A stretch of DNA of 64,000 bases from Eutreptiella sp. 'Long Island Sound 2002' (GCA_964036045.1 OZ038379.1:50282001-50346000); one strand, 5' to 3'; positions 4,551 to 60,634 are shown, numbered from the stretch's first letter. A program made the numbers and translations. The notes: generated by a model not told the origin, from the sequence alone.

Positions 4551-4633
4551 CTGGTGGGTGGGGGTTGGGGGATATTGGCCACATATTACTACACCCCTCT
4601 CAGCTTAAACTTAGCAAGCAAGCAAGCAAGAAG

Positions 4634-4634
4634 C

Positions 4635-4729
<95 letters not shown>
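4634..4729 (+). repeat. (CAA)n microsatellite, about 32 perfect units
   Basis: Seen directly. Preceded by (AGCA)n and followed by degenerate CAA/CAT units. Confidence 0.97.
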
Positions 4730-6954: not shown

Positions 6955-7024
6955 CTGCTGGAGGCTTGGCTGCCACGTTGCCTGAGGATTTGGCACGAGG
7001 CTTGCCAGCAACTTTGGGAAGGGG
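6955..7024 (-). CDS. Possible additional small exon of the Sec1/Munc18 gene (low-complexity loop)
   Basis: Strong donor CAG|GTGAGC at 6954, with an upstream T-tract and an AAG acceptor. One frame reads PLPKVAGKPRAKSSGNVAAKPPA. The phase cannot be reconciled unambiguously with the neighbouring exons. Confidence 0.25.
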
Positions 7025-15809: not shown

Positions 15810-18800
15810 GAGTAGGACCTCTAAGACTTGTACCTGTGCGCCATGCGGGCGCTCTGTCATTCATTTGTGTGCGCACGCTGGCGCTCTTAGACTCGCCTTT
15901 GCGCACCACGCTGGCGCTCTTAGACTCATACCCGTGCGCCACGCAGGCGCTCTGTCATTCATTTCCTTGCGCCAGGCAGGCACTCTGAGACTCACCTGTG
16001 CGGCCCACACGAGTGCTCTATCCCTTGTCTCCATGCGCCATGCAAGCGCTCCGAGACTCGCCTCCTTGCCACGCATGCACTCTGTCATTCGCATTTGTGC
16101 GCCACACAGGCGCTCTGTCATTCGTTCCTGTGCGGCACGCTCGCGCTCTGGGGCCCGCACCTGTGCGCCACACATGCGCTGTCTCGTTCGTTTATGTGTG
16201 CCATGCAGGCGCTCTGAGACTTGCTCCCGCGCTCCACACAAGCGATTTGTCATTCGTACCTATGTGCCACGTAGGCACTTTGCGATTTGTTTCTGTGCGG
16301 CACGCTCGCGCTTTGAGACCCTTACCTCTCTGCCACGGAGGCGCTCTCTCCTTCGTTTCTGTGCGCCAGTCGAGGCGCTCTGAGACTCGCTCCTGCGCCC
16401 CACGCACGCACTCTGTCATTCGTTTCTGTGCGCCACGCAGGCACTCTGTCCGTCGTTTTAGTGCGCCATGCAGGCACTCTGAGACTCATTCTTGTGCGCC
16501 GGGTAGGCTCTCTGACACTCGTACCTCTGGGCCATGTGGGCACTCTCTCCCTCATTTCCGTGCGCCATGCAGGGGCGCTATCATTCGACTCTCTGCACCA
16601 TGCTGGCACTCTGCGACTTGTACCTTTCCGCCATGAAGGCGATTTGTCATTCGTCTCAGTGCGCCATGTTGGCCCTCTCAGATTTGTACCTGTGCGCCAT
16701 GCAAGCGCTTTGACATTCGTTTCTGTGCGCCACGGTGGCGCTCTTAGACGCGCCTCTGTGTCCCACGCTGGCACTGTATCATTTGTTTCCGTATGATATG
16801 CTGGCGCTCTAAGACTCGTACCTGTGCGCCATGCAGGCGCTCTGTCATTCTTTTGCGTGCCCTATGCATGCACTCTGAGACTCACCTCTGTGCCCCACGC
16901 AGGCGTTAGGTCCTTCGTTTTCATGCGCCATGCAAGCGCTCTGAGACTCGCCTCCACGCGCCATGCAGGCGCTTTGCCATTTGTACCTGTGCGCCACGCA
17001 GGCGCTATGACACTCGTACATGTGCGCCATGCGGGCAGGCTATCCTTCGTTTTTGTGTGCCACGTCGGGCCGCTGTCATTCGAGTCTGCGCACCATGCTG
17101 GCACTTTGCGACTCGTACCTTTGCGCCACGCACGCAATGTGTCATTCATTTCCGTGCGCCGCGTAGGACCTCTGAGACTTGTACCTGTGCGCCATGCGGG
17201 CGCTCTGTCATTCATTTGTGTGCGTACGCTAGCGCTCTTAGACTCGCCTTTGTGCACCACACTGGCGCTCTTAGACTCATACCCGTGCGCCACGCAGGCG
17301 CTCTGTCATTCGCATTTGTGTGCCACACAGGCGCTCTGTCATTCGTTCTTGTGCGGCACGCTTGCGCTCTGGGGCCCGCACCAGTGCACCACACATGCGC
17401 TGTCTCGTTCGTTTATGTGCGCCATGCAGGCGCTCGGAGACTTGCTCCCGCGCCCCACACAGGCGCTTTGTCATTCGTACCCATGTGCCACGTAGGCACT
17501 TTGTCATTTGTTTCTGTGCGGCACGCTCGCGCTTTGAGACCCGCATCTGTGCGCCACGGAGGCGCTCTCTCCTTCGTTTCTGTGCGCCACTCGAGGCGCT
17601 CTGAGACTCGCTCTTGCGCGGCACGCAGGCACTGTGTCATTCGTTGTAGTGCGCCATGCAGGCACTCTAAGACTCATTCTTGTGCGCCGGGTAGGCGCTC
17701 CGACACGCGTACCTCTGGGCCATGTGGGCACTCTCTCCCTCATTTCTGTGCGCCATGCAGGGGCGCTATCATTCGATTGTCTGCACCATGCTGGCACTCT
17801 GCGACTTGTACGTTTGCGCCATTAAGGCGAATTGTCATTCGTCTCAATGCGCCATGTTGGCCCTCTCAGATTTGTACCCGTGCGCTATGCAAGCGCTTTG
17901 ACATTCGTTTCTGTGCACCACGGTGGCACTCTTAGACTCGCCTCTGTGTCCCACGCTGGCGCTGTATCATTTGCTTCTGTGTGATAAGCTGGCGCTCTGA
18001 GACTCGTACCTGTGCGCCATGCTAGCGCTCTGTCATTGGTTTCCGTGCCCTATGCATGCACTCGGAGACTCACCTGTGTGCCCCACGCAGGCGTTAGGTC
18101 CTTCGTTTTCATGCGCAATGCAAGCGCTCTGAGACTCGCCTCCACGCGCCATGCAGGCACTTTGACATTTGTACTTGTGTGCCACGCAGGCGCTATGACA
18201 CTCGTACATGTGCACCACGCGGGCACTCTATCCTTCGTTTTTGTGCGCCAGATAGGGCCGCTGTCATTCGATTCTGTGCACCATGCTGGCACTTTGCGAC
18301 TCGTACCTTTGCGCCACGCACGCAATCTGTCATTCATTTATGTGCGCCGAGCAGGACCTCTGAAGCTTGTACCTGAACGCCATGCGGGCGCTCTGTCATT
18401 CATTTGTGTGCGCACGCTAGCGCTCTTAGACTCGCCTTTGTGCACCACGCTGGCGCTCTTAGACTCATACCCGTGCGCCACGCAGGCGCTCTGTCATTCA
18501 TTTCCTAGCTCCATGCAGGCACTGTGAGACTCACCTCTGCGGCCCACACAAGCGCTGTATCCCTTGTCTCCATGCGCCATGCAAGCGCTCCGAGACTCGC
18601 CTCCTTGCCACGCATGCACTCTGTCATTCGCATTTGTGCGCCACACAGGCGCTCTGTCATTCGTTCCTGTGTGGCACGCTCGCGCTCTGGGGCCCGCACC
18701 TATGCGCCACACATGCGCTGTCTCGTTCGTTTATGTGTGCCATGCAGGCGCTCTGAGACTTGCTCCCGCGCCCCACACGGGCGCTTTGTCGTTCGCACCT

Positions 18801-21800
18801 ATGTGCCACGTAGGCATTTTGTCGTTTGTTTCTGTGCGGCACGCTCGCGCTTTGAGACCCGCACCTGTGCGCCACGGAGGCGCTCTCTCCTTCGTTTCTG
18901 TGCGCCATTCGAGGCGCTCTGAGACTCGCTCCTGCGCCCCACGCAGGCACTCTGTCATTCGTTTCTGTGCGCCACGCAGGCGCTCCGTCCGTCGTTTTAG
19001 TGCGCCAAGGGCACTGTGAGACTCATTCTTGTGCGCCGGGTAGGCGCTCTGACACTCGTACCTCTGGGCCATGTCGGCACTCTCTCCCTCATTTCTGTGC
19101 GCCATGCAGGGGCGCTATCATTCGATTGTCTGCACCATGGTGGCACTTTGCGACTTATACCTTTGCGCCATGAAGGCGAATTGTCATTCGTCTCAGTGCG
19201 CCATGTTGGCCCTCTCAGATTTGTACCTGTGCGCCATGCAACCGCTTTGACATTCGTTTTTGTGCACCACGGTGGCGCTCAGAGACTTGCCTCTGTGTCC
19301 CACGCCGGCGCTGTATCATTCGTTTCCGTGTGATATGCTTGCGCTCTAAGACTTGTACCTGTGCGCCATGCAGGCGCTCTGTCATTCGTTTCCGTGCCCT
19401 ATGCATGCACTTTGAGACTCACCTCTGTGCCCCACGCAGGCGTTAGGTCCTTCGTTTTCATGCGCCATGCAAGCGCTCTGAGACTCGCCTCCACGCGCCA
19501 TGTAGGCGCTTTGCCATTTGTACCTGTGCGCCACGCAGGCGCTATGACACTCGTACATGTGCGCCATGCGGGCACTCTATCCTTCGTTTTTGTGCGCCAC
19601 GTAGGGCCACGTCGCTGTCATTCAATTATGTGCACCATGCTCGCACTTTGTGACTCGTACCTTTGCGCCACGCATGCAATGTGTCATTTATTTATGTGCG
19701 CCGAGCAGGACATCTGAGACTTGTACCTGTGCGCCATGCGGGCGCTCTGTCATTCATTTGTGTGCGCACGCTAGCGCTCTTAGACCCGCCTTTGTGCACC
19801 ACGCTGGCGCTCTTAGACTCATACCCGTGCGCCACGCAGGCGGTCTGTCATTCATTTCCTTGCGCCATGCAGGCACTGTGAGACTCACCTCTGCGGCCCA
19901 CACAGGCGCTCTATCCCTTGTCTCCATGCACCATGCAAGCGCTCCGAGACTTGCCTCCTTGCCACGCATGCACTCTGTCATTCGCATTTGTGCGCCACAC
20001 ATGCGCTCTGTCATTTGTTCCTGTGCGGCGGCTCGCGCTATGGGGCCCGCACCTGTGCGCCACACATGCGCTGTCTCGTTCGTTTATGTGCGCCATGCGG
20101 GCGCTCTGAGACTTGCTCCCGCTCCCCACACAAGCGATTTGTCATTCGTACCTATGTGCCGGGTAGGCACTTTGCAATTTGTTTCTGTGCGGCACGCTCG
20201 CGCTTTGAGACCCGCACCTGTGCGCCACGGAGGCGCTCTCTCCTTCCTTTTTGTGCGCCATTCGAGGCGCTCTGAGGCTCGCTTCTGCGCCCCACGCATG
20301 CACTCTGTCATTCGTTTATGTGCGCCACGCAGGCGCTCTGTCCGTCGTTTTAGTGCGCCATGCCGGCACTCTAAGACTCATTCTTGTGCGCCGGGTAGGC
20401 GCTCTGACACGCGTACCTCTGGGCCACATCGGCACTCTCTCCCTCATTTCTGTGCGCCATGCAGGGACGCTATCATTCGATTCTCTGCACCATGCTGGCA
20501 CTCAGCGATTTGTACCTGTGCGCCATGCAACCGCTTTGACATTTGTTTCTGTGCACCACGGTGGCGCTCATAGACTCGCCTCTGTGTCCCACGCTGGCGC
20601 TGTATCATTCGTTTCCGTGTGATGTGCTGGCGCTCTAAGACTCGTACCTGTGCCCCATGCCATGCAGGCGCTCTGTCATTCGTTTCCGTGCCCTATGCAT
20701 GCACTTTGAGACTCACCTCTGTGCCCCACACAGGCGTTAGGTCCTTCGTTTTCATGCGCAATGCAAGCGCTCTGAGACTCGCCTCCACGCGCCATGCGGG
20801 CGCTTTGCCATTTGTACCTGTGCGCCACGCAGGCGCTATGACACTCGTACATGTGCGCCATGCGGGCACTCTATCCTTCGCTTTTGTGCGCCACGTAGGG
20901 CCGCTTTCATTCGATTATGTGCACCATGCTCGCACTTTGTGACTCATACCTTTGCGCCACGCATGCAATGTGTCATTTATTTATGTGCGCCGAGCAGGAC
21001 CTCTAAGACTTGTACCTGTGCGCCATTCGCGCGCTCTGTCATTCATTTGTGTGCGCACGCTAGCGCTCTTAGACTCGCCTTTGTGCACCACGTTGGCGCT
21101 CTTAGACTCACACCCGTGCGCCACGCAGGCGGTCTGTCATTCATTTCCTTGCAACATGCCAGCACTCTGAGACTCACCTGTGCGGCCCACACAGGCGCTC
21201 TATCCCTTGTCTCCATGCGCCATGCAAGCGCTCCGAGACTTGCCTCCTTGCCACGCATGCACTGTGTCATTCGCATTTGTGCGCCACACAGGCGCTCTGT
21301 CATTCGTTCCTGTGCGGCATGCTCGCGCTGTGGGCCCCGCACCTGTGCGCCACACATGCGCTGTCTCGTTCGTTTATGTGCGCCATGCGGGCGCTCTGAG
21401 ACTTGCTCCCGCGCCCCACACAAGCGATTTGTCATTCGTACCTATGTGCCACGTAGGCACTTTGCGATTTATTTCTGTGTGGCACGCTCGCGCTTTGAGA
21501 CCCGCACCTGTGCGCCACGGAGGCGCTCTCTCCTTCATTTCTGTGCGCCACTCGAGGCGCTCTGAGACTCACTCTTGCGCCCCACGCAGGCAATCTGTCA
21601 TTCGTTTCTGTGCGCCACGCAGGCGCTCTGTCCGTCGTTTTAGTGCGCCATGCAGGCACTCTAAGACTCATTCTTGTGCGCCGGGTAGGCGCTCTGACAC
21701 GCGTACCTCTGGGCCATGTGGGCACTCTCTCCCTCATTTCTGTGCGCCATGCAGGGGCGCTATCATTCGATTGTCTGCACCATGCTGGCACTCAGCGATT

Positions 21801-24800
21801 TGTACCTTTGCGTCATGAAGGCGAATTGTCATTCGTCTCAGTGCGCCATGTTGGCCCTCTCAGATTTGTACCTGTGCGCCATGCAAGCGCTTTGACATTC
21901 GTTTGTGTGCCCCACATTGGAGCTCTTAGACTCGCCTCTGTGTCCCACGCTGGCGCTGTATCATTCGTTTCCTTGTGATATGCTGGCGCTTTGAGACTCG
22001 TACTTGTGCGCCATGCAGGCGCTCTGTCATTCGTTTCCGTGCCCTATGCATGCACTCTGAGACTCACCTTCGTGCCCCACGCAGGCGTTAGGTCCTTCGT
22101 TTTCATGCGCCATGCAAGCGCTCTGAGACTCGCCTCCACGCGCCATGCAGGCGCTTTGCCATTTGCACCTCTGCGCCATGCAGGCGCTCTGTCATTCGTT
22201 TCCGTGCCCTATGCATGCACTTTGAGACTCACCTCTGTGCCCCACGCAGGCGTTAGGTCCTTCGTTTTCATGCGCCATGCAAGCGCATTGAGACTCGCCT
22301 CCACGCGCCATGTAGGCGCTTTGCCATTTGTACCTGTGCGCCACGCAGGCGCTATGACACTCGTACATGTGCGCCATGCGGGCACTCTATCCTTCGTTTT
22401 TGTGCGCCACGTAGGGCCACGTCGCTGTCATTCAATTCTGTGCACCATGCTCGCACTTTGTGACTCGTACCTTTGCGCCACGCATGCAATGTGTCATTTA
22501 TTTATGTGCGCCGAGCAGGACATCTGAGACTTGTACCTGTGCGCCATGCGGGCGCTCTGTCATTCATTTGTGTGCGCACGCTAGCGCTCTTAGACTCGCC
22601 TTTGTGCACCACGCTGGCGCTCTTAGACTCATACCCGTGCGCCACACAGGCGGTCTGTCATTCATTTCCTTGCGCCATGCAGGCACTGTGAGACTCACCT
22701 CTGCGGCCCACACAGGCGCTCTATCCCTTGTCTCCATGCACCATGCAAGCGCTCCGAGACTTGCCTCCTTGCCACGCATGCACTCTGTCATTCGCATTTG
22801 TGCGCCACACATGCGCTCTGTCATTTGTTCCTGTGCGGCGGCTCGCGCTATGGGGCCCGCACCTGTGCGCCACACATGCGCTGTCTCGTTCGTTTATGTG
22901 CGCCATGCGGGCGCTCTGAGACTTGCTCCCGCTCCCCACACAAGCGATTTGTCATTCGTACCTATGTGCCGGGTAGGCACTTTGCAATTTGTTTCTGTGC
23001 GGCACGCTCGCGCTTTGAGACCCGCACCTGTGCGCCACGGAGGCGCTCTCTCCTTCCTTTTTGTGCGCCATTCGAGGCGCTCTGAGGCTCGCTTCTGCGC
23101 CCCACGCATGCACTCTGTCATTCGTTTATGTGCGCCACGCAGGCGCTCTGTCCGTCGTTTTAGTGCGCCATGCCGGCACTCTAAGACTCATTCTTGTGCG
23201 CCGGGTAGGCGCTCTGACACGCGTACCTCTGGGCCACATCGGCACTCTCTCCCTCATTTCTGTGCGCCATGCGGGGGCGCTATCATTCGATTCTCTGCAC
23301 CATGCTGGCACTCAGCGATTTGTACCTGTGCGCCATGCAACCGCTTTGACATTTGTTTCTGTGCACCACGGTGGCGCTCATAGACTCGCCTCTGTGTCCC
23401 ACGCTGGCGCTATATCATTCGTTTCCGTGTGATGTGCTGGCGCTCTAAGACTCGTACCTGTGCGCCATGCCATGCAGGCGCTCTGTCATTCGTTTCCGTG
23501 CCCTATGCATGCACTTTGAGACTCACCTCTGTGCCCCACACAGGCGTTAGGTCCTTCGTTTTCATGCGCCATGCAAGCGCTCTGAGACTCGCCTCCACGC
23601 GCCATGCGGGCGCTTTGCCATTTGTACCTGTGCGCCACGCAGGCGCTATGACACTCGTACATGTGCGCCATGCGGGCACTCTATCCTTCGCTTTTGTGCG
23701 CCACGTAGGGCCGCTGTCATTCGATTATGTGCACCATGCTCGCACTTTGTGACTCATACCTTTGCGCCACGCATGCAATGTGTCATTTATTTATGTGCGC
23801 CGAGCAGGACCTCTAGGACTTGTACCTGTGCGCCATTCGCGCGCTCTGTCATTCATTTGTGTGCGCACGCTAGCGCTCTTAGACTCGCCTTTGTGCACCA
23901 CGTTGGCGCTCTTAGACTCACACCCGTGCGCCACGCAGGCGGTCTGTCATTCATTTCCTTGCAACATGCAAGCACTCTGAGACTCACCTGTGCGGCCCAC
24001 ACAGGTGCTCTATCCCTTGTCTCCATGCGCCATGCAAGCGCTCCGAGACTCGCCTCCTTGCCACGCATGCACTGTGTCATTCGCATTTGTGCGCCACACA
24101 GGCGCTCTGTCATTCGTTCCTGTGCGGCATGCTCGCGCTGTGGGCCCCGCACCTGTGCGCCACACATGCGCTGTCTCGTTCGTTTATGTGCGCCATGCGG
24201 GCGCTCTGAGACTTGCTCCCGCGCCCCACACAAGCGATTTGTCATTCGTACCTATGTGCCACGTAGGCACTTTGCGATTTATTTCTGTGTGGCACGCTCG
24301 CGCTTTGAGACCCGCACCTGTGCGCCACGGAGGCGCTCTCTCCTTCATTTCTGTGCGCCACTCGAGGCGCTCTGAGACTCACTCTTGCGCCCCACGCAGG
24401 CAATCTGTCATTCGTTTCTGTGCGCCACGCAGGCGCTCTGTCCGTCGTTTTAGTGCGCCATGCAGGCACTCTAAGACTCATTCTTGTGCGCCGGGTAGGC
24501 GCTCTGACACGCGTACCTCTGGGCCATGTGGGCACTCTCTCCCTCATTTCTGTGCGCCATGCAGGGGCGCTATCATTGGATTCTCTGCACCATGCTGGCA
24601 CTCAGCGATTTGTACCTTTGCGTCATGAAGGCGAATTGTCATTCGTCTCAGTGCGCCATGTTGGCCCTCTCAGATTTGTACCTGTGCGCCATGCAAGCGC
24701 TTTGACATTCGTTTGTGTGCCCCACAGTGGAGCTCTTAGACTCGCCTCTGTGTCCCACACTGGCGCTGTATCATTCGTTTCCGTGTGATATGCTGGCGCT

Positions 24801-25198
24801 TTGAGACTCGTACCTGTGCGCCATGCAGGCGCTCTGTCATTCGTTTCCGTGCCCTATGCATGCACTCTGAGACTCACCTTCGTGCCCCACGCAGGCGTTA
24901 GGTCCTTCGTTTTCATGCGCCATGCAAGCGCTCTGAGACTCGCCTCCACGCGCCATGCAGGCGCTTTGCCATTTGTACCTCTGCGCCACGCAGGGGCTCT
25001 GTCATTCGCGCCTGTGCGGCACAATGGCGCCTTGGGACCCGCACCTGTACGCTACACAGGCGTTTGTCCTTCGTTAGTGTGCGCCATGCAGCCACTCCGA
25101 GACTCGCTCCTGCGCACCTCGAAGGCGCTCTGTCATTTGCTACCGGTGCCACGCACGCGCTCTGTCCTTCATTTCTGTGCACCATGCAGGCACCGTGA
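15810..25198 (+). repeat. 33-bp satellite, main array with higher-order repeats (~1.2-1.5 kb and 2810 bp)
   Basis: Near-identical ORFs recur at an exact offset of 2810 (19650/22460, 20619/23429, 20939/23749, 21610/24420). A marker ORF recurs at 16845, 18033, 19382, 20676, 22192 and 23486. Confidence 0.97.
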
Positions 25199-29190: not shown

Positions 29191-29859
29191 AACTAGTGGC
29201 GGCCACCTTGGGTTGATTCGGGCCTGCCCCTCCACCCGGAAGCCGTGCCCGTGACGCACGCCGGACGCGACCAACAACGCCCCCACCGGCGCACGCGTCG
29301 TCCTCGGCCGACGCGTACTCCCGGCAGGAGCCACAAGTGGCCTTCTCCCCATCCCTGGGGTACCCCGCACCGGAGGGGTTTTGGACCCCCCGATGCCCTG
29401 ACGTGGCCTTGCACCAATGAGGAATCCCCCCCCCCCTCCCCCTACGTCCCCGTTCGAGGCCGAGGACACGCAGATGGCCTCATCGCCAGCTGGTGCCCCC
29501 CTTGGCCCAGCACCGGGAGCCTCAAAAGCCCTCCCTCTGGCGCCTTCCTCAGCGGAAGAATCTCCCCCATCGGGGGAAGTGGTGGCTTCCGAAGTGAAAA
29601 CTTTGCCGGCACATTTCGGTGCCCCCCCCCCCCCCCCCTGAAGCTGGCAGACGCCTTCGGACTTGGGCGCACATTTGCCCTCCCAACTCTGGAAGCCGAT
29701 GCCCACCTCCTCGGACGTCTTAAGGGGGAAGGGGGGGGGGGTTCTGAGAGGGACCCATCGCCTGAGCAGGTTGACTCCCCTGATACCCGCTCACCGCTCC
29801 CATCGACGCTCCCCACGAGTGCACCCCGCTCCTTGCAACCCCTAGCCCTGGAGCCCTAG

Positions 29860-29968
29860 GTACTTGTATGAAAAGTAGTATTGTTCATAATTCATTTTTT
29901 ATTTATGAACGGTTCATATATGAACCATGAATTACGAACAGTTATTATGAACGCTTCTTTCTCCACAG
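29860..29968 (+). other. GT-AG intron C1 with GTTCATAA/TTATGAAC inverted motifs
   Basis: AG|GTACTT ... CTTCTTTCTCCACAG|. The donor could alternatively be at 29866. Confidence 0.65.
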
Positions 29969-30698
29969 ATTTTGTTATGTCTTATTGTCCCTCCGTCTTC
30001 ACGGAGCTGAACATGATGCTTGTTCGGCTTAGTGGTGCCACCAGTCTTCGGCGCAACAAGTGTTCCGACCTTTTGGCCCAATGGATGTCATCGTCCCCCC
30101 TCATGCGGGCCCGTTTTACGGAGGCAATGGACCACGCTCCCCTCCCGGCGGTCCACGAAACCAACGTGCACGCCATCTGTACGTATGCGGAGGCCCTCTT
30201 TCCCGCACCCTATCTGATAGGGCTCCTATTGGAGTTGCGTGCACCCCGGTCCGGCGTCCGCGTGTTGTCTGAGTACATCACCCGCCGGGGCGACGCCTAC
30301 ACCGCCCACACCGGGCTGCCCTTTCCACGGCCCATCCCCACACGGGACCAATTTGACGCAACGTGGAAGTCATTGACCGCACCGTTTGTGTTGTCCCCCC
30401 CGGTAGAATGTGCCGACCCCCCATCGTCGCGTCACTGCTGGCTCATGCGGTCGTGGGCACAATACGTGCAATCCCGGCCAGCCCTGTGCCAGTCTATTGA
30501 CTGGACCTGCCCCCTCACCCTTGTGGTGCGGCGTGACGGGTATCCTTGCGCCGGTGGCGGTTGGTCGCAGCTATCGGTGGGGCTATTGAACCATCGGGTA
30601 AGAGTGCGCACACTTGCCTTCCAATGTGTCATCGGCATGGCCCTCACGGGGACAAGGCTATGGTTGCCTTCGGCCAAATTTGGGCTAAGGTGCTACAG

Positions 30699-30844
30699 GT
30701 AGTCTGCATTATCGTGTTCATCACTGGTTCATAATTGACGCGTTCATGATTCGAAAACTGCCGTCATAAAACGCCGTACTGCCGAATTCTGAATTGTGAA
30801 CGTGTTTTATGAACACGACTTATGAACACCTTTTATGAACACAG
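30699..30844 (+). other. GT-AG intron C2 (146 nt) with GTTCAT/ATGAAC motifs
   Basis: CAG|GTAGTC ... TTATGAACACAG|. This phase-0 join gives KVLQ-RL*SIFDRKSYYW..GGDQ, in frame with ORF 30995. Confidence 0.8.
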
Positions 30845-31946
30845 CGCCTGTAGTCAATTTTTGACCGCAAAAGTTATTACTGGTGTGACAGCTGCGTGCC
30901 GGCAACGGTCCTCCTTGGTGGGGACCAGCCGTGGCCCCGGAGGTTGCTGGGCATCACCGTGGCTCCCCAAGTGTAGAGCATTTTCAACGAGGCCGTGCGT
31001 GACAACAAGGCCAAGTGGTGGAATGGCGTCGCTGCACCGAGGACAACGCGGTCGGATGCAAACAATCATTGTCGCTATCTGGTGACCCGCAAAAATTTGG
31101 ATGCGGCAGGATGCACCGGCGAGCCGCTGCTGGTCATAGCCAGAAATTGGGTATTATTGTGCATATTGCACTGTTGCATGGCCTTCGGGAGGCTCTTGGT
31201 GGCCTTCTTGGGGGCCCAGGTGGGAAATCATCCCCATGAGGTTGCAGGGGAGGTACAGAAAATTATGTACTGCAACCGTTGTGGCGTGCGGTTGGGGGTG
31301 CACAACGTACCGGACGGGGAGGAGGCCCACAACCTGTTCTGTGCAAGGGAGCAGATTGCGCCGCTGCTTGCATGCGTCAAGGAGGACCCCACGTGGCAAG
31401 CGGTTGGAGGGCTGCGAACATTGCTACGCACTTTGTACTCGCCGATTCCGGTTGTGGCACGCCCTTCGTGCCGAATCGTTGCTGCTGCGTTTCGGGAACA
31501 CTGCTGCGGCCAGTCGGGTTCACACTATTTGTTGTTGCTCGAAGAGGACTGTGATGCCATGCTCGAGAGTGCGAATGCATGTGGGGTGGGATTGGCTGCT
31601 GCGTCCGGGGACGTTGTGGACAGCACAAATTACACTTTGAAGAAGGGATGTAATGGGCATAGTTCCAGGGGTGCGGGTGTGGGTAAGAATGCAGCGGAAC
31701 GGGAAGCAATGGTCGTCCTGCAGGTTTGAAAATGGTGGTTTCTAACCTTTGACCTGCCAATGTTGCACTACAACACCCCACATACCGCGGCGTGCACCGC
31801 CGTCTCACTTCTAAGCACCACCCCCCAAGCACCGTCCACCCACGCGCCCTTTGCGACCGAGCTTTATTACTCTTCGCCCATCCATGGACGCCGCCGAGCT
31901 GAGGAAGCTACTGGAGGAGAGCCAGAAGGCAACCTTGGCCCTAGTG

Positions 31947-32096
31947 GTATGCTGTCAGTGTGCTGTTGTGCGCGTTCATATTGCGTTGATGATTCGGCGT
32001 TCATAAAACGGAAACTGCCGTCGTAAATGAATTCATTATGAACCGATTTATGAACTGATGAATTATGAATCGCTTGTATGAACGATTTATGAACAG
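31947..32096 (+). other. GT-AG intron C3 (150 nt) with GTTCATAA/TTATGAAC motifs
   Basis: GTG|GTATGC ... TTTATGAACAG|. Confidence 0.7.
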
Positions 32097-33194
32097 CGTC
32101 CCCCATGTCCACATGAGCAGCGACTGGAGGCCATGCTCCAGCTCCAGCTCAGCCTCGAGCTCCACCTCCACCTCCACCTTCACCTCAAGCTCCTCTGCCT
32201 CCTCAAGCCCACGTCCAACCCCATGCCGCTCACCCCGCGTGCCAACCCGCCGCCGACTCCTCGACTGAGGAGTCAACAGACTCCTCGGAGCAAGAGAGGA
32301 AGAGGAGGAAGAAGGAGGAGGAGAAGGAGGAGGAGAAGAGGAAGAAGGAGAAGAGGAAGGAGGAGAAGAGGAGGAAGAAGGAGGCAGCGGGGGGGAGGGG
32401 GGTGCGGGAGGAGGAGGCCGCGACCGACATTGAGGACGTGAAGGCCGAGATCGAGGACATGGCAGTGGAGGGGGACGCAGGGGGGGGGGGGAGGGGGGGG
32501 GGGTTGTGGCCCCATGGTTGAGGGGGGAGGCGGGCCATGCGTGGGGCCTGGGCCACACCAACCAACGCAACGTGTTGACCCTCCCCCGGGCGCAAGGAGG
32601 GCTGAACAGTGGGTAGTCCCCCGATGCCCCGCTTTTTTCGAGCCCCGAGGTGACTTACGTCACCCTGCGCTGGGCATTTCGCCGCCTTGTGCCGCACCGC
32701 ATCCGCAATAAGGGGGGGGCCTGGCGGTACACGGGGAGGGGGGGGGGGGCATAGGCATGGAAGCCCAAGCCGGGAAAGCCTCTGCCCCCCATCCCCGAAC
32801 CAATTGGGGCTGGGGATTTGACGCGGTCCAAAGTTTTTTCGGGGCCGCGTGGGGCCTTGACGCGGGCCTCCCATTGGGAGCTGTTGTTCCTCCACTGGGG
32901 GGAAATGGGGTGGGTGAAGCTGCAGCGCTCCGTGCGCAATTTCGGGTGCATCCCCAAGTGGGAATCAATTTTGGGGGGGGGGGTTATGACCCGTGGCAGG
33001 AGGCGTTGTACGAGGGGGCCGTGGAGGGCCTCACCATCACCCGCCCCATCAAGCCCCTTTGCCGGGCAGCCCGGGCCACCAGCAGCACCACGGGCCTCAC
33101 TGGCGCCCCCCAGGGCACCCCTCCTAGCGCGGCTGCGAATGTGCGGAACGCCTTGGGCGCCATGCAGACCATCGGACGACAGCCGGATTTTGAG

Positions 33195-33323
33195 GTATGT
33201 GCGTTCATAATTCGTTCATAATTCGTTCATTATTCGGCATTCATAATTCTGCGACCCTGCACTGCCCGTTTATGAACCATGAAAGCGTTTTATGAACGCG
33301 TTTTATGAACGGCACTGTCACAG
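33195..33323 (+). other. GT-AG intron C4 (129 nt), hairpin-like
   Basis: GAG|GTATGT, then 3-4 GTTCATAA-like copies, then 3 TTATGAAC copies, then TCACAG|. The splice is frame-preserving (phase 0). Confidence 0.82.
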
Positions 33324-33979
33324 GTCGTGGACGTGGAAGTGAAACCGGCGGACGTCGCGGGGGTTCGCATCCGGTACCGGTTGGGCACCGCCGAGTTCAG
33401 CATCCCCCTGTCCGCCCTGTACTAGCTGTTGCTCCTCAGCCCCCAACGGGGGTGCGCCATCCTCTCCGGGCTGTGGGAGAGGGAGCGCTCCCGCCGCTTA
33501 ACGGACACTTGGGCGGCGAATACGCCCTGCTGGGCGAGGCTGGGGGAGTTGGGGTGGGAGGGGTGTGCTGACGAGGAGATCCTGCTGTCCAGTTGTGGGT
33601 TGAGCCCCCCCACCCCCGGCAGCCCCCGCAGCACCTCCCGAGCAAAGCCCGCCGCCGAGAAACCCAAACGCCCTGCCGTGCCCCCCCCCCCCCAACCCAC
33701 GCAACCCAAAAAGCCCCCCCCCTCTGAAGCGCAAGTCCTTCGAATCGTGCAGCAGCTCATCGTAGGACCAGGCACACCCCCGTGGACATGGGAAGGGGGT
33801 GAAGGGGAAGCAGCCCGAGCAGCAAAAGCGGCGCAAAGAACCCCCCTCTTTGGAGGGGGATGAGTCACCTGACCGACAGGCCCTAGCCCTGAGGTTTAGG
33901 GCGGCATGAACAAGCAAGGACAAGGAAGGACAAGCCAGTATAGGAAAGATTGAAGCTTGAGCGATTTTTGTGTGCCTTT

Positions 33980-34086
33980 GTATTTGTTCATAAAACGTGT
34001 TCATAAAAAGCGATCATAAAACGCTCGGCGCGTTCATGAAACGGGTTTTGAATTACGAACTGAATTATGAACCGAATTATGAACAG
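33980..34086 (+). other. Fifth GTTCATAA/TTATGAAC block (GTATTT...TTATGAACAG), either a 3'-UTR intron or a subterminal array
   Basis: Same architecture as C1-C4, but outside any recognisable coding sequence. Confidence 0.55.
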
Positions 34087-34429
34087 GGGAGGGTGTTTTC
34101 ATAATTTTCAAAAATTGGCACAAATGGCAATTTTTCCAAAAAAAACCCGGCAGACAAAAAAGAACTCACCTCAAGGGGGTTGACCCCACCCCCCAGTTTT
34201 GAACGAAAAAGGCCCATGGGTACCCTAGCAAGAGCAAAATCGGTCCATATTGCATTAAACCATTTATGATGAACAAAACTACCTTTCATACACGTACCAA
34301 GGGAGGATCACGAAAACCCTGCAGGTGGGCTAGGGTCATCCGAGTCAAGGTCCCCCCCCCCCCCCCCCCCGCACCGTTGTCCCCCCCTTCCAAGCCTCTC
34401 GGATGTAAATTGCACCCCCGCCCAAACCT

Positions 34430-35399: not shown

Positions 35400-36200
35400 C
35401 TCCCCCTGGTGCAATGCCACTTCCGGCCCCCTGTAAAATCCCGGTCGCCTGATAGCAACCACCCCCCCTCCCCCCTCACCTCCGCCCTTGGACTCTTTCT
35501 ACTGCCCATTTGCCCCCTTCTCGGAACCGCCCCATTTGGCTCCATACTCCCGTTGGTTCCGCACCATACCCACACAGTTCCCCACGCAAACTTATTCCAG
35601 GGGGTCCCACCGTCTTCAGGGGGCGTCAGGACAATGTCGGAATCCACGACCCCTCCCCCATCCCCTCCTTCTATCCCTTCCATGTCTTCAACAACCCATT
35701 CCTCCCCCGGACGCCCCAAAAACTCCTTCAAGAGTTTGCATTGCCACGACGTCCACCGGAGCATATGGGGGTACCTTGCATCTACTCCACGTTGGCCACC
35801 TAAATCAGAGGGATGGGCTCCTCCTTCTCCTCCTTCTGCTTCTCCTTCCCCTTGCCGCTCTTCAACTCCTCCGACTCCTTCCGCATGCCGCTTGTACTGG
35901 CGGCCAGCAATTGCAGCACCTCGCCCTGCAGCCGCATCATCTCCATCTTCTTCGCCAGCGTCTGCCCCATCCCAACCTCCCCCTCTTGCGGCCCCCACGA
36001 TGCCCCCGCCTGTCCCGCCTCACCCTCCCCTCCCCCTCCGTCGCCGCGGAAGCGGACTTGAATGTGGTCCCCCGTGTGCAACTCCTCCTTCTCGTCACAT
36101 AGCACTCTTCCCCCTGGAACAAGCCACCATGCTCCCACAGGCGCCCCCCAAGCTTCCTGCACCGCGCGGTGCAAGTCCTCCATCCCACCCACTTGCCGCT
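35400..36200 (-). pseudogene. gag-like ORF of the YR element with an N-terminal ubiquitin-like segment and a coiled coil
   Basis: EDLHRAVQEAWGAPVGAWWLVPGGRVLCDEKEELHTGDHIQVRFRGDGG, followed by LAKKMEMMRLQGEVLQLL and an E/K-rich stretch. Confidence 0.5.
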
Positions 36201-36229
36201 GGCACCAACCCTCGTACCTGACTGGGCCC

Positions 36230-37550
36230 CGGGCCGTCTTTCATTCGTTTTTGCGCATCACAGAGGCACTCTGTCATTCAATTCTGCACACCACGTTGGC
36301 GCTAGGAGACTCGTACCTGTGCGCCACGCAGCAAATGTGTCATTTCATTCTTTGCGCCACGGAGGCACTTTGTTAGTCGATCCTGCACGCCTTAGACTCC
36401 TACTTGAGCGCCCCGCAGGCCCACTGTCGTTCGCTTTTCCGCACCATGGAAGCGCTCTGGGACTTGCCTCCGTGCATCATACACGCGCTCTATTCGTACT
36501 TGTGCGCCACGCAAGCCCTCTGTCATTCGTTCCTGTGCGCCACACACGGGGTCTGAGAACAATCCCTGTGCGCCATGCCGGCGCTTAGATAGTCGTTCCT
36601 CTGCGCCACTCAGGCTGTCAAAGACTCGCCTCCGTGCACCACGCAAGCGCTCTGTGATTTGTTTGTGTGTGCTGGGCAGGTGCTATGAGAGTCATCGATG
36701 TGTGGCACGCAGGCGCTATGTCATTTGGTTTTGTGCGCCACGCAGGCGCCCGGCGACTCGCCTCCGTGCGCCACATAAACCTTCTACCATTCTTTTGTGT
36801 ATGCCACAAAGGCCCTCTGTCATTCGTCTTCTGTGCGCCGTGCTGGCGCTCGAAGACTCATACGTGTGCGCCACACAACACTATGTCATCCATTCCTGTC
36901 CGCCTTGCTAGTGCTCTAGGACCCGTACCCGTGCGCCACACAGGCGCTCTATCTTTCGTTCCTGTGCGCCACGGAGGCAGTCTCAGAGTCGTGGCTGAGC
37001 ACCGCGAAGGCGCTCTGTCATTCGATTCCGCGCACCAAGCAAGCGCTGGAGAACAGCCTCCATGTGCCACGGAGGCACTCCGTCATTCGTTTCTTTGCGT
37101 CATGCAAGTGCCGTGAGAATTGCCTCAGTGTGCCATACAGGCGGTATTTCATTTCTTCCTATGCGGCATGTTGGCGCTCCGAGACTTGCACCCGTGCGCC
37201 AGGCCTGGCAGCTGTCATGCAGGCGCTCTAAAATTTGTCGGTGTGCGCCTCGTAGGCACTCTATCTACGTTCCTGTGCGCCACGCAGGCACTTTGGGACT
37301 CGCCTCAGTGCGCCACGCAAGCGTTCTGTCCTTCATTCCTCTGCGCCACGCAAGCGTTCTTTCTGTCGTTCTTCTGCGCCACACGGGTGCTCCATCATGT
37401 GTTTCTAAGCGCCATGTAGGCGTTCTACAACTCATACTTGTGCCCCACGCAGGCACTATATCATATGATCCGTTTCTGTGCACCACCTAGGTGCTCTAAG
37501 AGTTGCACGTGTGTGCCCCGCGGGTGACCTGCCATTCGCTCGTGTGCGGC
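36230..37550 (+). repeat. 33-bp satellite, diverged forward segment
   Basis: GTGCGCCAYGCAGGCGCT cores at about 33-bp spacing. Confidence 0.9.
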
Positions 37551-37639
37551 ACCTCAGCGTTTGGACGGGCTCCTTCTATATCATTTTCATTATTCTCCTC
37601 CGCCCCTGTTGGTTCTGTATGTTCTCCTAGAGGACCAGA

Positions 37640-39230
37640 ATCACGGAGGCGAGTCTCATAGCGCCTGCATGGCGCACGGGAACACAGAACAGAGCGCCAA
37701 CGTGTGGCACGCAGAGGTGAGTCACAAACCGCCTGCGTGGCGCAGAGATGCGTGTGTGGGAGTGCCTCTGTGTTGCACAAGGACCAGTCCCAGAGCGCCT
37801 GTGTGGCACACGGGAATGAATGATAGAGCGCCTGCATGGCGCACAAGAGCAAAAGACACAATGAGTGCCTGCGTGGTGTGCATAGGCGAGTGTGAGAGCG
37901 CCTGCATGGCGTAGAGATGCGTCTCTCGCACTGCCGGCGTGGTGCTAGGAGGCTAGTCTCAGGGCGCCTGCATGGCGCCGGGTAACCAAGGACAGGGTGC
38001 CTGCATGGCGCACAAGAACGAATCAAAGAGCGCCTGCATGGTGCACCGGATGGAATGGCAGAGCACATCGTGGCGCGCAGAGGTGAGTCGTAAAGCGCCT
38101 GCGTGGCGCACAGATGCGTGTCTCGGACTGCCTGTGTGTTGCACAAGGACGAGTCCCAGAGCGCCTGCGCGGCACACGGCAAGGAATGACAGGGCGCCTG
38201 CATGGCACACAAGATGAAAAGACACAATGAGTGCCTGTGTGGTGCGTACAGGCGAGTCTGATATCGCCTACATGGCGCACAGATGCGTCTCTCACACTGC
38301 CGGCGTGGTGCAAAGGGGCTAGCCTCAGGGCGCCTGCATGGCGCAGGGAAACCTAGGACAGAGCGCCTGGATGGTGCACAAGAGCGAATGGAAGAGCGCC
38401 TGCATGGCGCACCGGGACAAGTCCGAAAGTGTCTGTGTGGCGCAAAGGAACCAAATACATAGCGACTGCATGGCACACAGGTAGGGATCTCAGAGCGCCG
38501 CCATGGCACACAGGAACGAATCACAGAGCGCCTACATGGCACAAGAGTACGAGTTTGGGAGCGCCTGCATGGGACCCGCAAATATATGGCAGAGCGCCAA
38601 CGTGGCGCATCGGAGCGAGTCCCAAAGCGCCAGCGGTGCGCCCTTGCACGAACGACCCAGCGCCTGTGTGTGGCGCACGCAGGCGAGTATCAAGACACTT
38701 GCATGGCGCACAGACACAACTGACAGGGCGCCTCCGTGTGGCGCCCAAAGGCGAGTCTCTCAGTGCCAGCATGGCACACAGAAACGAATGTTAGATGACC
38801 AGCTTGGAACGAGTGCACAGCGCACGGAGGGGAATCTCAGGGTGGTGCACAGGATTGAGTCTCAAGACGCTAGCGGGACGCACAGAAGACGAATGACAAA
38901 GCACCTGTTCGGCGTACATAGAAGAATGACAGACTGCGTATGTGGTGCACGGTGGCGAGTCTCAGAGCGCCTGTGTGGCGTACAAAGGTGCTTCTCAAAG
39001 CGCCTACTTGGCACACAGAAAGAAATGACGGATCGCCTACGGGGCGCACAACGACGAGTCTCAGAGTGCATGCATGGCGCACCAAAATGAATGACACGGC
39101 GCCTGCGTGGCACATGGGGGCGAGTCTCAGAGTGCCCGTATCGCGCACAGAAAGGAATCAAAGAGCGCCTGTGAGGCGCTCAAGTACGAGTCTCGGACCG
39201 CCTCTGTGGCTGAACGCAGGCGAACCTCAA
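37640..39230 (-). repeat. 33-bp satellite, inverted segment
   Basis: Reverse-complement cores (AGCGCCTGCRTGGCGCAC) throughout. Confidence 0.9.
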
Positions 39231-57074: not shown

Positions 57075-57850
57075 TTAGGAGCTTCGCCGTCCTTTCAACA
57101 ATCCTGTCAATGTCCCATTCTTCGTCCTCGGCCCAGTGAGAGGACGACAACGCTTTTGAAGGTGCCTCCTCTTAGACGCAATGTCCCAATCTCCGTCCTT
57201 GTTGGAGGACTCGAACCCGAACTTCTCCGCGGGGGGTGGGCTTGGGGGTGCGCAAGGTGGTGGTGCTCGTGGGTGGTGGGTGAGTTTGGGGGGGGGGTTG
57301 ACGGAAGGCACGGAGGCCTTTGTGGGCTGGGGAAGGGGCTTTGGAAGCCGCGCAAGAATGGGGATGGGGTCTCCAGTGACGTTGGGGGGTAGAACCCCAC
57401 TACCCTCTGCCATCAACTCTTGCCTTCCGAAGCCCATCCACCCGTGCCACATTCCCTGCAACCTAGACCCCTTTCTTGCCCTCCCCCACCTCTCCAGCGC
57501 ATCTAGCACCTCAATCACCACCAAGGGAGACACCATCATGCACGCGTAGAGCGTCGGCAAGGACCAGGCGCATGTCGCCGCTAGGCCTCCAGAACCGGAT
57601 CCAGGCACCCCACGGATCCCAGGATTTGGTCTCCACATCCGATACCTACGAAGTGGATGCGGATCTAGAAGTGTTCTACAACTCAATTCTAAAACCGTTT
57701 TAATCATAAAAGCGGCGATGAGGCAACGGCGTTTTTTGGAACGGTTTTACGGTTTATGAGTAGAACGGGTTTAAAACGATCACACGATGCACGTAACAAA
57801 CCTGGATACTTTGGTCCATCCATGTCGCCAATGCCCGCAGTGCCGCACAC
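57075..57850 (-). pseudogene. Spliced ORF downstream of transposase D, similar to the second gene of C
   Basis: EEELCAALRALATWMDQSIQ | intron 57665-57801 | ... WSLPTLYACMMVSPLVVIEVLDALERWGR, then a Pro-rich region. Confidence 0.45.
57665..57801 (-). other. GT-AG intron D3 (137 nt) with GTTCTA/TAGAAC inverted motifs
   Basis: CCAG|GTTTGT ... TAGAACACTTCTAG|. Confidence 0.6.
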
Positions 57851-58049
57851 AACTCCTCCTCGGGGTGGGGGGCTCGGCTACCTTGGGGGGTAGGTGCAAT
57901 GGTAAGGCTAGGGCGGCGGCCTGGCACTCCTTGCCTCCCCGCTTGTGGATCCTCGCCCTACCCCCCCCGAACCCCCTTGCCAAGGCCTTTGCTACATGGA
58001 ACCCCCCAAAACGTAAGATGGCATCGCCGTCGGGTTGCCATGCCCCCCC

Positions 58050-59510
58050 CCCCCCCCCTGCCCCTTCCCCATTTCAACCACCTTCCCCAACCTGGCCGCC
58101 TCCCACACCCGGAAGCACAAAGAAAATTGGCCGCATTAGCCCACCCAACAAAGCATGACCAAAAAATTAGCTGAGCCCCCTTGCTTAGTGTGTAACACGG
58201 ACCACCCGCAGCGGTTGTCCACAGGTAGCTTCTCCACTCGAACCTTGTCCCCCTAGTGCAGCTGGCATGCAAGGGGCTCTGTACAGGCACCCTACAAGTG
58301 CCCCAATGCCATAACACAAAGGAGCATGCAGGGGACCACTCAATGCCCGGGACGCCGAAGCAGGGGGTAAGCGCTATATTGCGCTGCTTGTAGGGAGGGT
58401 GCCCCCTTCATGTACTTGGGCAAGTGGGTGGCATCGCCCTCAACACTGCGCTGCATGTCCAAAATGCGCCACTGTTTGGCCTTGCTATCCCACACACCCT
58501 TGTTGAAGAGGGTTGCCACTTGGGGAGACACGGAGATGCCCATAATGCGACCAAGGACCGGGCTGTCACCACCCACTCTCAATGTGGCAGGTTGGGGCCC
58601 CTCCGAGCCCCATGCAACCGGTTTGTGGTGCATGTTCTGGAGTTCTCCTAATAGTGCGATTCTAAGATAGTTCTAAAACCGCCTCCGATGCAGCTGGTTT
58701 TCAGCATTAGAACTGTTTCAGAACGACTTTTAGAAGGCTTCTGGAACTTTCATTTCCCGTACAAGCTGCAAACCATCGTTGGCAGTCTTTCTTCCAAAGG
58801 GTGCCCACGGACTTCCTTTCCTTGTCGCTACAATTAGCCAAGGCTATTACCCATACCCCCCCCCCCCCCTGGGTGTGCGGGCTACCTGGCCAAAGTAGGC
58901 CGGGTTGGTGGACATCCGTGTCAATGAAGTGCCCGCAACCCGCAACCGGGTGGCTGTCCCCACGCACTATGAAGGTGGAATCACGGCTGCGGTCATTGAC
59001 ACCTTGGAGAGGCTGTGCAGGTACCGGATCCATGACTTAAGCGACCATCTCATACCGGTGGCTCGGGGGAATGCGGAGCACACCGGGGGGTCCAGCTAAA
59101 GTGGGGCGGGCAACTCCTTCTAGAAGGCGTCGAGCGGGTCCCGGGTGCAGAAGGGCCGTGAGTACCACATACTCCACCACACCGTATTGCGGTATCTAAG
59201 GCCCTGCAATGAGAGTTCCAACAGCCGCCGGAATCCCTTACGAAGTGCCCGCATATCCAAGATGAGGCTGACAACGGCTGTGGGGGTAAACAGGTGTTTG
59301 GCATATTAGGCCACAACAGCTTTGCAAGCGTCATCATGGATTTGGGGGCCCAACTCGGCGAGGGCCACCTTGAGTTGATGTTGAGCCAAGGAGGAAGACT
59401 GGAACCATTGCACAAGCAAGTGGCCCACACGGAAAACCCCCAAACTGGTAGCGCCGCTGAGGGTAAGCACTTGCTTACACAACTCATGGATTTTGGACAT
59501 AAACAAAAAC
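58050..59510 (-). pseudogene. RAG1/Transib-like transposase D, paralogue of C, spliced and 3'-deleted
   Basis: Collinear matches to C: LSGATSL; LLVQWFQSS vs LLAQWMSSS; VRGDSHP vs VRRDGYP; PATLRVGGDSPVLGRIMGISVSPQV vs PATVLLGGDQPWPRRLLGITVAPQV; VVPCMLLCVMALG vs VLLCILHCCMAFG; DNRCG vs CNRCG. Confidence 0.8.
58637..58762 (-). other. GT-AG intron D2 with TTCTAA/TTAGAA inverted motifs
   Basis: Donor |GTACGG at 58762. The acceptor is either TAG (intron end 58648) or CAG (58637). It lies within a few codons of C2's position. Confidence 0.6.
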
Positions 59511-59626
59511 CTAGGAGTAAAAAGGCGTTCCAAAACAGCTCTAAACGTGAGTTATTCTGAAATTCCAAATTCTAAAATAGCTGTTTCTTTTAGAATTCCA
59601 ATTAGAACAAAACCACTCGTTCTAAC
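59511..59626 (-). other. GT-AG intron D1 with TTCTAA/TTAGAA inverted motifs
   Basis: Acceptor CCTTTTTACTCCTAG| directly precedes FLFMSK, as C1 precedes DFVMSY. The donor (59626 or 59616) is uncertain. Confidence 0.6.
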
Positions 59627-60634
59627 GGTCCCCGGGGCCAACGAACGGGCGCCAGCGAGCGGACGTCCCGAGCATCATTGACATTGTGACACAGTTCAGC
59701 TTTTTCAAATACCACCATACCACCTTCAATCACATACATCCTGCTTGCTTATGATGCAATGATGTTTGGCAACAACGTGGGCCCAGGCACCACAACATGG
59801 CACCCAAATGCGGGCTTATTGGTCACCATCTAGGTCCCAATCTTCTGATTTCAGCCCTCTAGTAGGCCTTGTGGTCCGCCACAAGGTGTGTGGCCCCTGA
59901 GACATGATGCCATTGGGTCCGAAGGTCTGGGTACGAGAGGGTGGCCGAGGGGACAAAGTGCAAGTTTTTGGCGACGGGAGACAATGCAGTAGGCCCCCTG
60001 GTGAATTGGTGATTGCACGTATTGGCGCTCTCCCAGATGAGGTGGGGCCTGGGATTGCTTGTAGCTAGAATCCGGGGGCTGCATTTGGGCCATGAGGGTG
60101 GCGGTGTTAGTGAGCGGGTAGGCACAATGCAAGAGGTATTAGGCCCCCGCTTGGGTGAGGGGTTAGCGGCTGCTAGCGGCGCGGAGGAGGGTGTTTGTGA
60201 GTTGGACAGTGTTGCGAAGGCACAGTTCTGGGTAGCATGCAGCCCCGTCTCCAGTGGGCAAGGAAGGAAGTGGAAGGGGGTCCAAATACGCAGATGGATT
60301 GCACAGTGGTAGTGGCAATTGGTGAGTGTTTGGAGGATCACTAGGGACAAGTGTGCGTAGGACACCATGGGTAACAAAATCGAGCTTGGCCAAGGATTAG
60401 GCATGGAAAATTTGGATGCAGAGGAGGGGGTTCACGTGGTCCTCTGCCGCAATGTGACAGTCTACCTTGCGGAACTTGGGAATCCGTTTGGCGAGACTCT
60501 GACTTGAGATGGGGATATGGATCATCCCCTTTTTTTGGGGGGGGGGGGTCCAAAGACGGCATGCTTTATGCAGCCGCAGCCGTTAAGGACTGTTTTCTTT
60601 TGTTGTGGTCCGGCCTTAAGGCCAATTTTGTCCC

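Follow-up and report, generated by a model that had tools for sequence, protein, structure and literature searches.

Organization of element C

The stretch of DNA considered here, 64,000 nucleotides from Eutreptiella sp. 'Long Island Sound 2002' (OZ038379.1:50282001-50346000; the whole stretch is referred to as the window), contains element C, a two-gene transposon with terminal inverted repeats (TIRs) in which AT-rich blocks, built of the same short motif that stands in both ends of the element, flank and interrupt the genes. Three of these blocks (C2-C4) are well supported by comparison as spliceosomal introns, and the arrays that they hold may be docking or titration sites for a protein encoded by the element itself. 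Coordinates are counted from the first letter of the window, with C on the + strand, and relatives were taken from metagenome and assembly contigs (L numbers) and from database proteins (P numbers). The features of C and of a paralogue in the same window, element D, are as follows (nt, nucleotides; ORF, open reading frame).

29854..34303, + strand: whole element C, TIR transposon of ~4.45 kb, high copy number, decayed copy, two genes
29854..29901, + strand: left TIR, with tip CCCTAGG, a conserved GAAARGTAG and the first motif copy from position 30
29860..29968, + strand: block C1, left TIR plus subterminal array, starting 6 nt inside the element
29977..30698, + strand: gene 1 exon 1, N-terminal helical region and first catalytic Asp motif (VVRRDGYP)
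30699..30844, + strand: predicted intron C2, 146 nt, phase 0, hairpin, between the two catalytic Asp motifs
30845..31946, + strand: gene 1 exon 2, with GGDQPW (second Asp), CILHCxMAxGRL, PDGEE, DVV(E>D)SxN and RGGG; predicted RAG1/Transib-like core
31884..31946, + strand: gene 2 exon 1, 21 codons from the ATG
31947..32096, + strand: predicted intron C3, 150 nt, phase 0, hairpin; alternative in-frame AG at 32120
32097..33194, + strand: gene 2 exon 2, a Pro-rich, then Lys/Glu-rich, then Gly-rich region
33195..33323, + strand: predicted intron C4, 129 nt, phase 0, hairpin; frame preserved exactly
33324..33863, + strand: gene 2 last exon, with an in-frame TAG at 33426 in the window copy
33980..34086, + strand: block C5, right subterminal array, after the last ORF and 216 nt from the right tip
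34256..34303, - strand: right TIR, with a single inward-facing motif copy that starts at position 30 from the tip
57665..59637, - strand: paralogue D, truncated and decayed, 40-43% amino acid identity to C

The two TIR arms are 48 nt long and 81% complementary. When contigs of three public runs from one study, whose data behave as DNA, were aligned to the window, summed contig depth jumped ~30-fold at the left end of C and ~30 contigs per run diverged immediately before 29855; C is therefore a repeat family of hundreds of copies, with its left end at 29854/29855. Alignment to a second copy (L007), carried on a 365 kb contig from a public assembly, begins at exactly 29854 with 85% identity, and this copy is decayed like the window copy, which carries stops at 30851, 30974, and 33426 as well as frameshifts. 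The L007 copy is also rearranged (3895-8867), with a 270-nt piece of the right end plus 76 nt inserted at the point matching window position 32789, after which the element resumes, an arrangement that resembles a nested or aborted insertion. The flanks of C in the window (..TGGAG on the left and AGGAT.. on the right) contain no 5-bp repeat at any offset tried, and a 2-bp AG/AG match is possible there; a 2-bp target duplication match in L007 was discounted because the right end in that copy is the rearranged piece. No empty insertion site was found in the window, in L007, or in L010.

Long homopolymer runs of G or C are frequent (29620-29640, 32479-32503, 34349-34372, and others), the public-run contigs break at them, and several frame breaks of the window copy of C are located in such runs. 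Short telomere-like repeats, CCCTAA/CCCTAG or GGGCTAG, adjoin the ends or subterminal arrays of several family members (window 29838-29859 and 33881-33900; L005 49-70; L001 1757-1775; L010 7320-7390), and these could either belong to the ends or be a favored target.

Motif blocks and their folding

The motif GTTCATAA has 20 exact matches in the window against 1.1 expected, a count reached by 0 of 100 shuffles, and all 20 lie inside the five AT-rich blocks C1-C5, which hold ~35 copies when one mismatch is allowed. The GC content of the blocks is 29-42%, compared with 58-67% for the exons. In every block the exact plus-strand copies all stand before the minus-strand copies, an order with a chance of 1/2880 by hand count, and neighboring copies are mostly 11-13 nt apart, which is about one helical turn; in C1, plus and minus copies are interspersed once one-mismatch copies are included. 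All five blocks fold as long imperfect hairpins, more stable than dinucleotide shuffles of the same sequences (z of -3.0 for C1, -3.4 to -4.0 for C2, -3.35 for C3, -3.9 for C4, and -2.6 for C5), with stems that end 2-17 nt from the splice sites. When the spacers alone were shuffled and the motif copies were kept fixed, the real folds were unexceptional (z -0.5 to -1.9, and +0.4 for C5), and because the excess stability disappears in this way, the hairpin is a consequence of the inverted motif arrays and not of extra complementarity. A preliminary description of this DNA, made from the sequence alone, had reported five AT-rich motif blocks with GT..AG ends, had placed plus copies in the 5′ half and their reverse complements in the 3′ half with more interspersion in C1, and had expected folding to bring the splice sites together. 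All of this was borne out, the folding in every block and the interspersion in C1 at the one-mismatch level.

These blocks are not equivalent, since C1 and C5 are end arrays and C2-C4 interrupt coding sequence. Both C1 and C5 have GT..AG ends yet lie outside coding sequence. The GT of C1 belongs to the TIR tip (CCCTAG/GTAC), and its 3′ end is a pyrimidine tract plus CAG that lies 9 nt before the gene 1 ATG (29977); D, L005, L006, and L007 have an equivalent C/T-rich tract plus AG at 9-10 nt upstream of the ATG. To judge from these positions, the terminal CAG of C1 is a candidate acceptor for trans-splicing or for a 5′ untranslated region intron rather than a demonstrable intron end. Acceptors consisting of a C-rich tract plus CAG have been reported for the introns and outrons of Euglena (PMC11170887); if the host is a euglenid, the C1 acceptor fits those reports, and as a lead only, it may mark a site of spliced-leader addition, which if true would spare the element the need for a promoter of its own.

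The arrays are also labile. Block C4 of L007 carries one additional 12-nt motif unit, and the DNA contigs include hybrid blocks as well as deletions in which the 5′ half of a block runs directly into the 3′ half of one further downstream; the arrays thus expand, contract, and recombine. Joints at 29890>30821, 31956>33288, and 33246>34061 in other genomic copies delete the intervening exon, so that blocks serve as breakpoints yielding shorter derivatives. C2 and C3 have a common loop module beyond the motif, and blocks at their 5′ ends resemble the inner TIR.

The motif at the ends and its lineage-specific versions

Each TIR of C contains one inward-facing motif copy. In six ends, namely the left and right ends of C, both ends of L007, and one end each of D and L005, the first GTTC falls exactly at position 30 from the CCCYRGG tip, although the tip of D was placed partly by counting back from the motif. 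The resulting site, (C)GTTCATAA(A/T)(A/T), lies 22 nt inside the 7-nt tip. Among relatives the motif takes lineage-specific forms (GTTCATAA, GTTCTAAAA, GTTCAAA, CGTTCTAC, TTTCTAG, and GTGTGCATCA), and each element's commonest 7-mer is peculiar to its lineage and restricted to its own blocks, as listed here.

C and L007: commonest motif GTTCATA
D: commonest motif TTCTAAA; motif GTTCTAAAA/TTTTAGAAC
L001: commonest motif CGTTCTA(C)
L005 and L008: commonest motif CGTTCAA
L006: commonest motif TTTCTAG
L010: commonest motif GTGTGCATCA, with an 11-nt period and a single orientation

The ends and introns of any one element always carry the same version of the motif, and most internal blocks retain the plus-then-minus order and the helical spacing across lineages with protein identities of only 30-40%.

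When metagenomes were scanned for pairs of motif copies separated by 3-5 nt, 120 loci emerged, most of them attributable to chance. The clustered ones among them (L043, L102, and L045) are on low-GC contigs of bacterial appearance that have no relation to the element. Their TGTTCATAA/TTATGAACA clusters, in mirror orientation (L043 7250-7430, L102 3095-3250, and L045 865-1080), resemble the iteron or origin-type arrays of bacteria and are a coincidental look-alike of the motif.

Gene structure and intron positions

Removal of C2, C3, and C4 restores a frame that matches the homologues. The ends of these blocks are GTAGTC..ACACAG (C2), GTATGC..GAACAG (C3), and GTATGT..GTCACAG (C4), and the corresponding ends in relatives are GTGCCC..CGCCAG (L005), GTTTGT..CTTCAG (L006), and GTCGCG..CTTCAG (L008). 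For C2, the donor at 30699 was set by comparison with L007 and other relatives, the window copy being without four bases (GTTT) at that point; exon 1 of the window copy has also lost one G in a G run near 30648, which shifts a frame that is intact in L007, and together the two losses explain the apparent frame problem at C2. A conventional 59-nt intron at 30598-30656, considered as an explanation of the frame change, was rejected, as P0047 aligns over these positions, which are coding, and the change comes from the one G lost in the window copy. The acceptor of C2 is the CAG ending at 30844, and a second in-frame AG, the end given in the preliminary description, follows at 30853; since the 9 nt after 30844 are coding in L007 (VLQ) and in relatives (AIQ or ELQ), C2 is better ended at 30844, a CAG-to-TAG change in the window copy having put a stop within those 9 nt. 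The preliminary description held that removing C2 and C4 restores the frame exactly, which is the case for C4 and becomes so for C2 only after the 1-nt loss is recognized.

Where the window copy has TAG at 30974, most copies read GAG, and in gene 2 exon 2 of the window copy a C is absent after 32127, with other breaks at G runs. Gene 1 has an uncertain end, which overlaps the first part of gene 2. Between 31730 and 31946 the gene 1 frame stays open beyond the conserved domain, across the gene 2 ATG and as far as the C3 donor, as it also does in the L007 copy (P0001); the two genes may overlap, or may share C3 by alternative splicing.

The C2 site lies five residues after a conserved Trp, and an intron is present there in about ten diverged lineages, being seen in C, L007, D, L005, L006, and L008. 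Its state in relatives is as follows.

L005: GT..AG block of 185 nt at the C2 site
L006: GT..AG block of 294 nt at the C2 site
L008: GT..AG block at the C2 site
L009 and L010: matching acceptor seen at the C2 site
P0152, P0153, and P0154: ORFs continue beyond the C2 site from a GT codon
P0154: ~50 codons read through at the C2 site, then VLQEVLD
P0016: copy of the window family, with a C2-like block by chance open in frame
L001/P0047: contiguous across the C2 site, aligning on both sides

The intron of D (58762-58637, 126 nt, phase 0, GT..AG), with 40-43% amino acid identity to C on either side of it, occupies the C2 site and, as in C, stands 15 codons before the PAT..GGD motif. In L001 a motif block is found elsewhere, further upstream in exon 1, and ends in a C-rich tract plus AG. 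The C3 site is occupied in three lineages, with L005 and L008 having a gene 2 first exon of 22 codons followed by a hairpin intron. Fold z values for the introns of relatives are -2.5 in L005, -1.8 in D, and -1.2 in L006. Because the catalytic Asp motifs flank C2 and the family has reached hundreds of copies with the block in place, removal of C2 from the mRNA is the one reading that would work. The blocks had at first all been taken for spliceosomal introns; comparison gives good support to this for C2-C4, which have GT..AG ends in phase 0, align with relatives, and are matched by the contiguous P0047, so that their removal from mRNA is predicted. The name lacks support for C1, a TIR plus array, and would be no more than tentative for C5, the right subterminal array.

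The transposase core

A search of 1.84 billion representative proteins yielded 298 homologues of the gene 1 product at E <= 1e-3, which have in common the motifs RGDGYP, GGDxPWLRRLLG, CILHCxMAxGRL, PDGEE, DVVESxN, and RGGG. No match was obtained in Pfam for 27 protein pieces and the homologues, in the PDB by sequence and profile searches, or in the ESM Atlas, and Rfam gave no match in the window. Structure was more informative. An AlphaFold model of homologue P0047 has a predicted local distance difference test score (pLDDT) of 66 overall and >90 in the core, and an exhaustive structure search (VIA-align) with this model placed RAG1 first, at Z 10.9 with 264-292 residues aligned, followed by BbRAGL (10.8), HzTransib (8.1), and the P element transposase (7.1), the first unrelated chain scoring 6.2. 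The top 45 Foldseek matches are all RAG1/Transib family proteins, with a best E of 7e-4. At the level of the fold, this model supports a transposase core of RAG1/Transib type. The large ORF of element A, another element of the window, was tried as a relative of gene 1 and is unrelated.

Introns as proposed arrays of the end-recognition site

From the anatomy of the element, the intron sites, the end motif, the lineage-specific motif switches, and the fold, all of which are observed, we infer splicing, protein binding, and an effect on transposition. Element C would be a two-gene TIR transposon with a transposase of RAG1/Transib-like core, and the short A/T-rich site inside the tip would serve for end recognition in a heptamer-spacer-nonamer geometry. 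Copies of this end site without the tip would make up the arrays, spaced about one helical turn apart, in C1, in C5, and in introns C2-C4, each intron containing left-end-type copies followed by right-end-type copies. Splicing would take the arrays out of the mRNA, and at the DNA level they would be binding sites for a protein of the element itself, be it the transposase (through its N-terminal part) or the gene 2 product; such binding could concentrate the protein on the element, or could titrate and so repress it. It is proposed that introns house the arrays because coding sequence could not accommodate them. The RNA hairpin would follow from the inverted arrangement and may in addition aid splicing by bringing the splice sites together. 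To the reading that the introns hold arrays of the end-recognition site, at which a protein encoded by the element would dock or be titrated, we assign a probability of roughly 0.5. The further proposal that a nonamer-like site was multiplied into intron arrays, and that each sister lineage switched its site together with its transposase, is more tentative.

The preliminary description had offered two origins for the blocks, mobile introner-like units that spread within the element or transposase-binding arrays hidden from the protein by splicing. The second appears to fit best, given that the motif stands at TIR position 30 and changes in step between ends and introns. Several observations weigh against it. 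The intron of L009 is not a clean inverted array. Between C and L007, motif positions are 91.4% conserved and spacers 86.7% (p 0.07), in a comparison biased by the choice of motif positions. The AlphaFold model of the putative DNA-binding N-terminal part has a pLDDT of 50, too poor for a test for a nonamer-binding fold. The tip is CCCTAGG rather than CAC..., and no 5-bp target duplication is visible, which leaves the analogy with Transib incomplete. Finally, the in-step change of the motif could come from homogenization among arrays, with the internal arrays being functionless.

This last point leads to the main rival, a neutral by-product in which ordinary old introns were filled or overwritten from the subterminal arrays by slippage, unequal exchange, or gap repair after excision, so that only the terminal arrays would be functional and the internal ones would be tolerated because they are spliced out. 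The gain and loss of whole 12-nt units, the hybrid blocks and half-block deletions that attest array recombination, the loop module common to C2 and C3, and motif positions hardly better kept than spacers are all consistent with such an origin. It demands, however, homogenization in every lineage so thorough that intron and end motifs always match, and it must contend with the order and helical spacing kept in most internal blocks despite protein identities of 30-40%; on balance it is unlikely, though it is the strongest of the competing explanations. Less probable is a function at the RNA level, in which the hairpin itself matters. Folding well below shuffled controls in every block, stems ending close to the splice sites, and folding of relatives' introns (that of L005 above all) point in this direction, as do descriptions of euglenid introns that combine canonical borders with stable structure (PMC4770533) and the requirement of nonconventional introns for terminal pairing (PMC12501133). 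Against this, the spacers contribute nothing beyond the motif arrangement, the introns of D and L006 fold weakly, and the same motif occurs in TIRs and in the one-orientation arrays of L010, where there is no hairpin. The likeness to structured introns of euglenids that was noticed at the outset extends to canonical borders with stable structure and stops short of the CAG/CTG signature at +4..+6/-8..-6, the pairing characteristic of nonconventional introns, which is absent.

Introner-like units, that is, small non-autonomous insertions with splice signals of their own that jump to new sites, including sites in the parent element, are improbable as a general account. The block of L001 at a different place in exon 1, with none at the C2 site, the similarity of C2 and C3 beyond the motif, and the resemblance of 5′ block ends to the inner TIR are what such units would leave, and given the L001 site and the loop module, an introner-like origin is weakly supported for the birth of individual introns. 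Mobility is where the idea falters: no motif block was found beyond the limits of the element, whether in the window, the remainder of L007, or L010 of the same assembly (~88 kb of genome), the blocks are without TIR tips or flanking target duplications, the sites of C2 and C3 are ancient and have stayed fixed across deep divergence, and no precise block-skipping joint is present among the DNA joints listed (49 further joints are unlisted). The idea that the blocks are not introns at all, and interrupt dead pseudogenes from which they are never removed, with GT..AG ends by chance, draws on the decay of the window copy, with its three stops and its frameshifts. It is very improbable, because the three internal blocks are all phase 0 with GTA.../...CAG ends and conserved coding resumes exactly after them, and because the same site is occupied in about ten lineages by a block with a GT start and a pyrimidine tract plus AG end, one relative being contiguous there.

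Arrays of binding sites near transposon ends and structured introns in euglenids are already known. In the literature, no description was found of introns at fixed positions in transposon genes that are made of the element's own end-recognition motif, nor of such a motif that varies between lineages in concert with the ends. Should the transposase bind the arrays, the family would provide natural enzyme/site pairs, about six in number, for studying how signal recognition by a RAG1-like recombinase evolves, a matched recombinase/signal series showing how RAG-type enzymes change their DNA specificity. It would also represent a new transposon use of introns, as protein-docking or self-limiting DNA, and a concrete case of intron DNA that serves a mobile element and not the mRNA. 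RAG1/Transib-like elements with end geometry like that of recombination signal sequences (RSSs) would at the same time extend to a protist.

Surroundings of element C

The whole window is derived from repeats and has no evident host gene. Large satellite arrays of a 33-nt unit flank its transposons (15834-25191, 7839-9294, and 36100-38600). Element A has a private palindrome of 20-22 nt with a GGGCACTGCAGTGCCC core, found at 9504, 9834, 10880, 11600, 12254, 13989, and 15340 and including both ends of that element; its center, CACTG/CAGTG, resembles two heptamer-type tips joined head to head.

Comparison with known systems

The TIRs of Transib elements, described by Kapitonov and Jurka, and the RSS consist of a heptamer, a 12/23-type spacer (22-23 bp), and an A-rich nonamer (PMC1131882). 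Element C resembles Transib and RAG1 in the predicted DDE core fold and in having, at both ends, a 7-nt tip, a spacer of ~22 nt, and an A/T-rich 8-9-mer from position 30. It differs from them in its CCCTAGG tip where theirs is CAC, in the lack of a visible 5-bp target duplication, in having no sequence-level match in Pfam or the PDB, in a second and unrelated gene, in its protist host, and in the multiplication of the nonamer-like site into arrays, some of them within introns.

Arrays of subterminal repeats are a feature of En/Spm (a CACTA element with 12-bp sites for TnpA) and of Ac/Ds, where they are known only from the subterminal few hundred base pairs and serve a binding protein encoded by the element. 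As in those elements, C has a short element-specific motif, in direct and inverted copies, near both ends in mirror orientation, together with two genes and introns. Unlike theirs, the arrays of C make up whole introns at conserved positions in the genes, and the motif differs between sister lineages. Introners and introns derived from miniature inverted-repeat transposable elements (MITEs) are known in Micromonas, Aureococcus, and dinoflagellates. They share with the blocks of C a short structured unit with inverted repeats, splice signals, and a tie to a DNA transposon family, whereas the blocks of C are not dispersed in host genes in the ~88 kb of genome viewed, have no TIR tips or target duplications, and occupy ancient positions.

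Internal THAP sites of the P element (PMC7776569) and additional binding sites in the ends of piggyBat (PMC11707139) reportedly tune the activity of those transposons, and the idea that extra binding sites within an element enhance or restrain transposition is common to them and to C. Their sites are reported to be in end regions and to have been demonstrated experimentally, whereas the sites of C are in introns and their role is a proposed one.

Among euglenid introns, the 'conventional/intermediate' class combines canonical borders with stable secondary structure (PMC4770533), and the nonconventional class has non-canonical borders and pairing of +4..+6 with -8..-6, usually CAG/CTG, with a CCAGG / CCTG consensus (PMC4770533, PMC11170887). 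With the former, C2-C4 have in common GT..AG borders, a stable stem that brings the ends close, and a CAG acceptor as in Euglena (PMC11170887). They differ in having no CAG/CTG terminal pairing and in a stem built of a repeated motif that also stands in the ends of the transposon.

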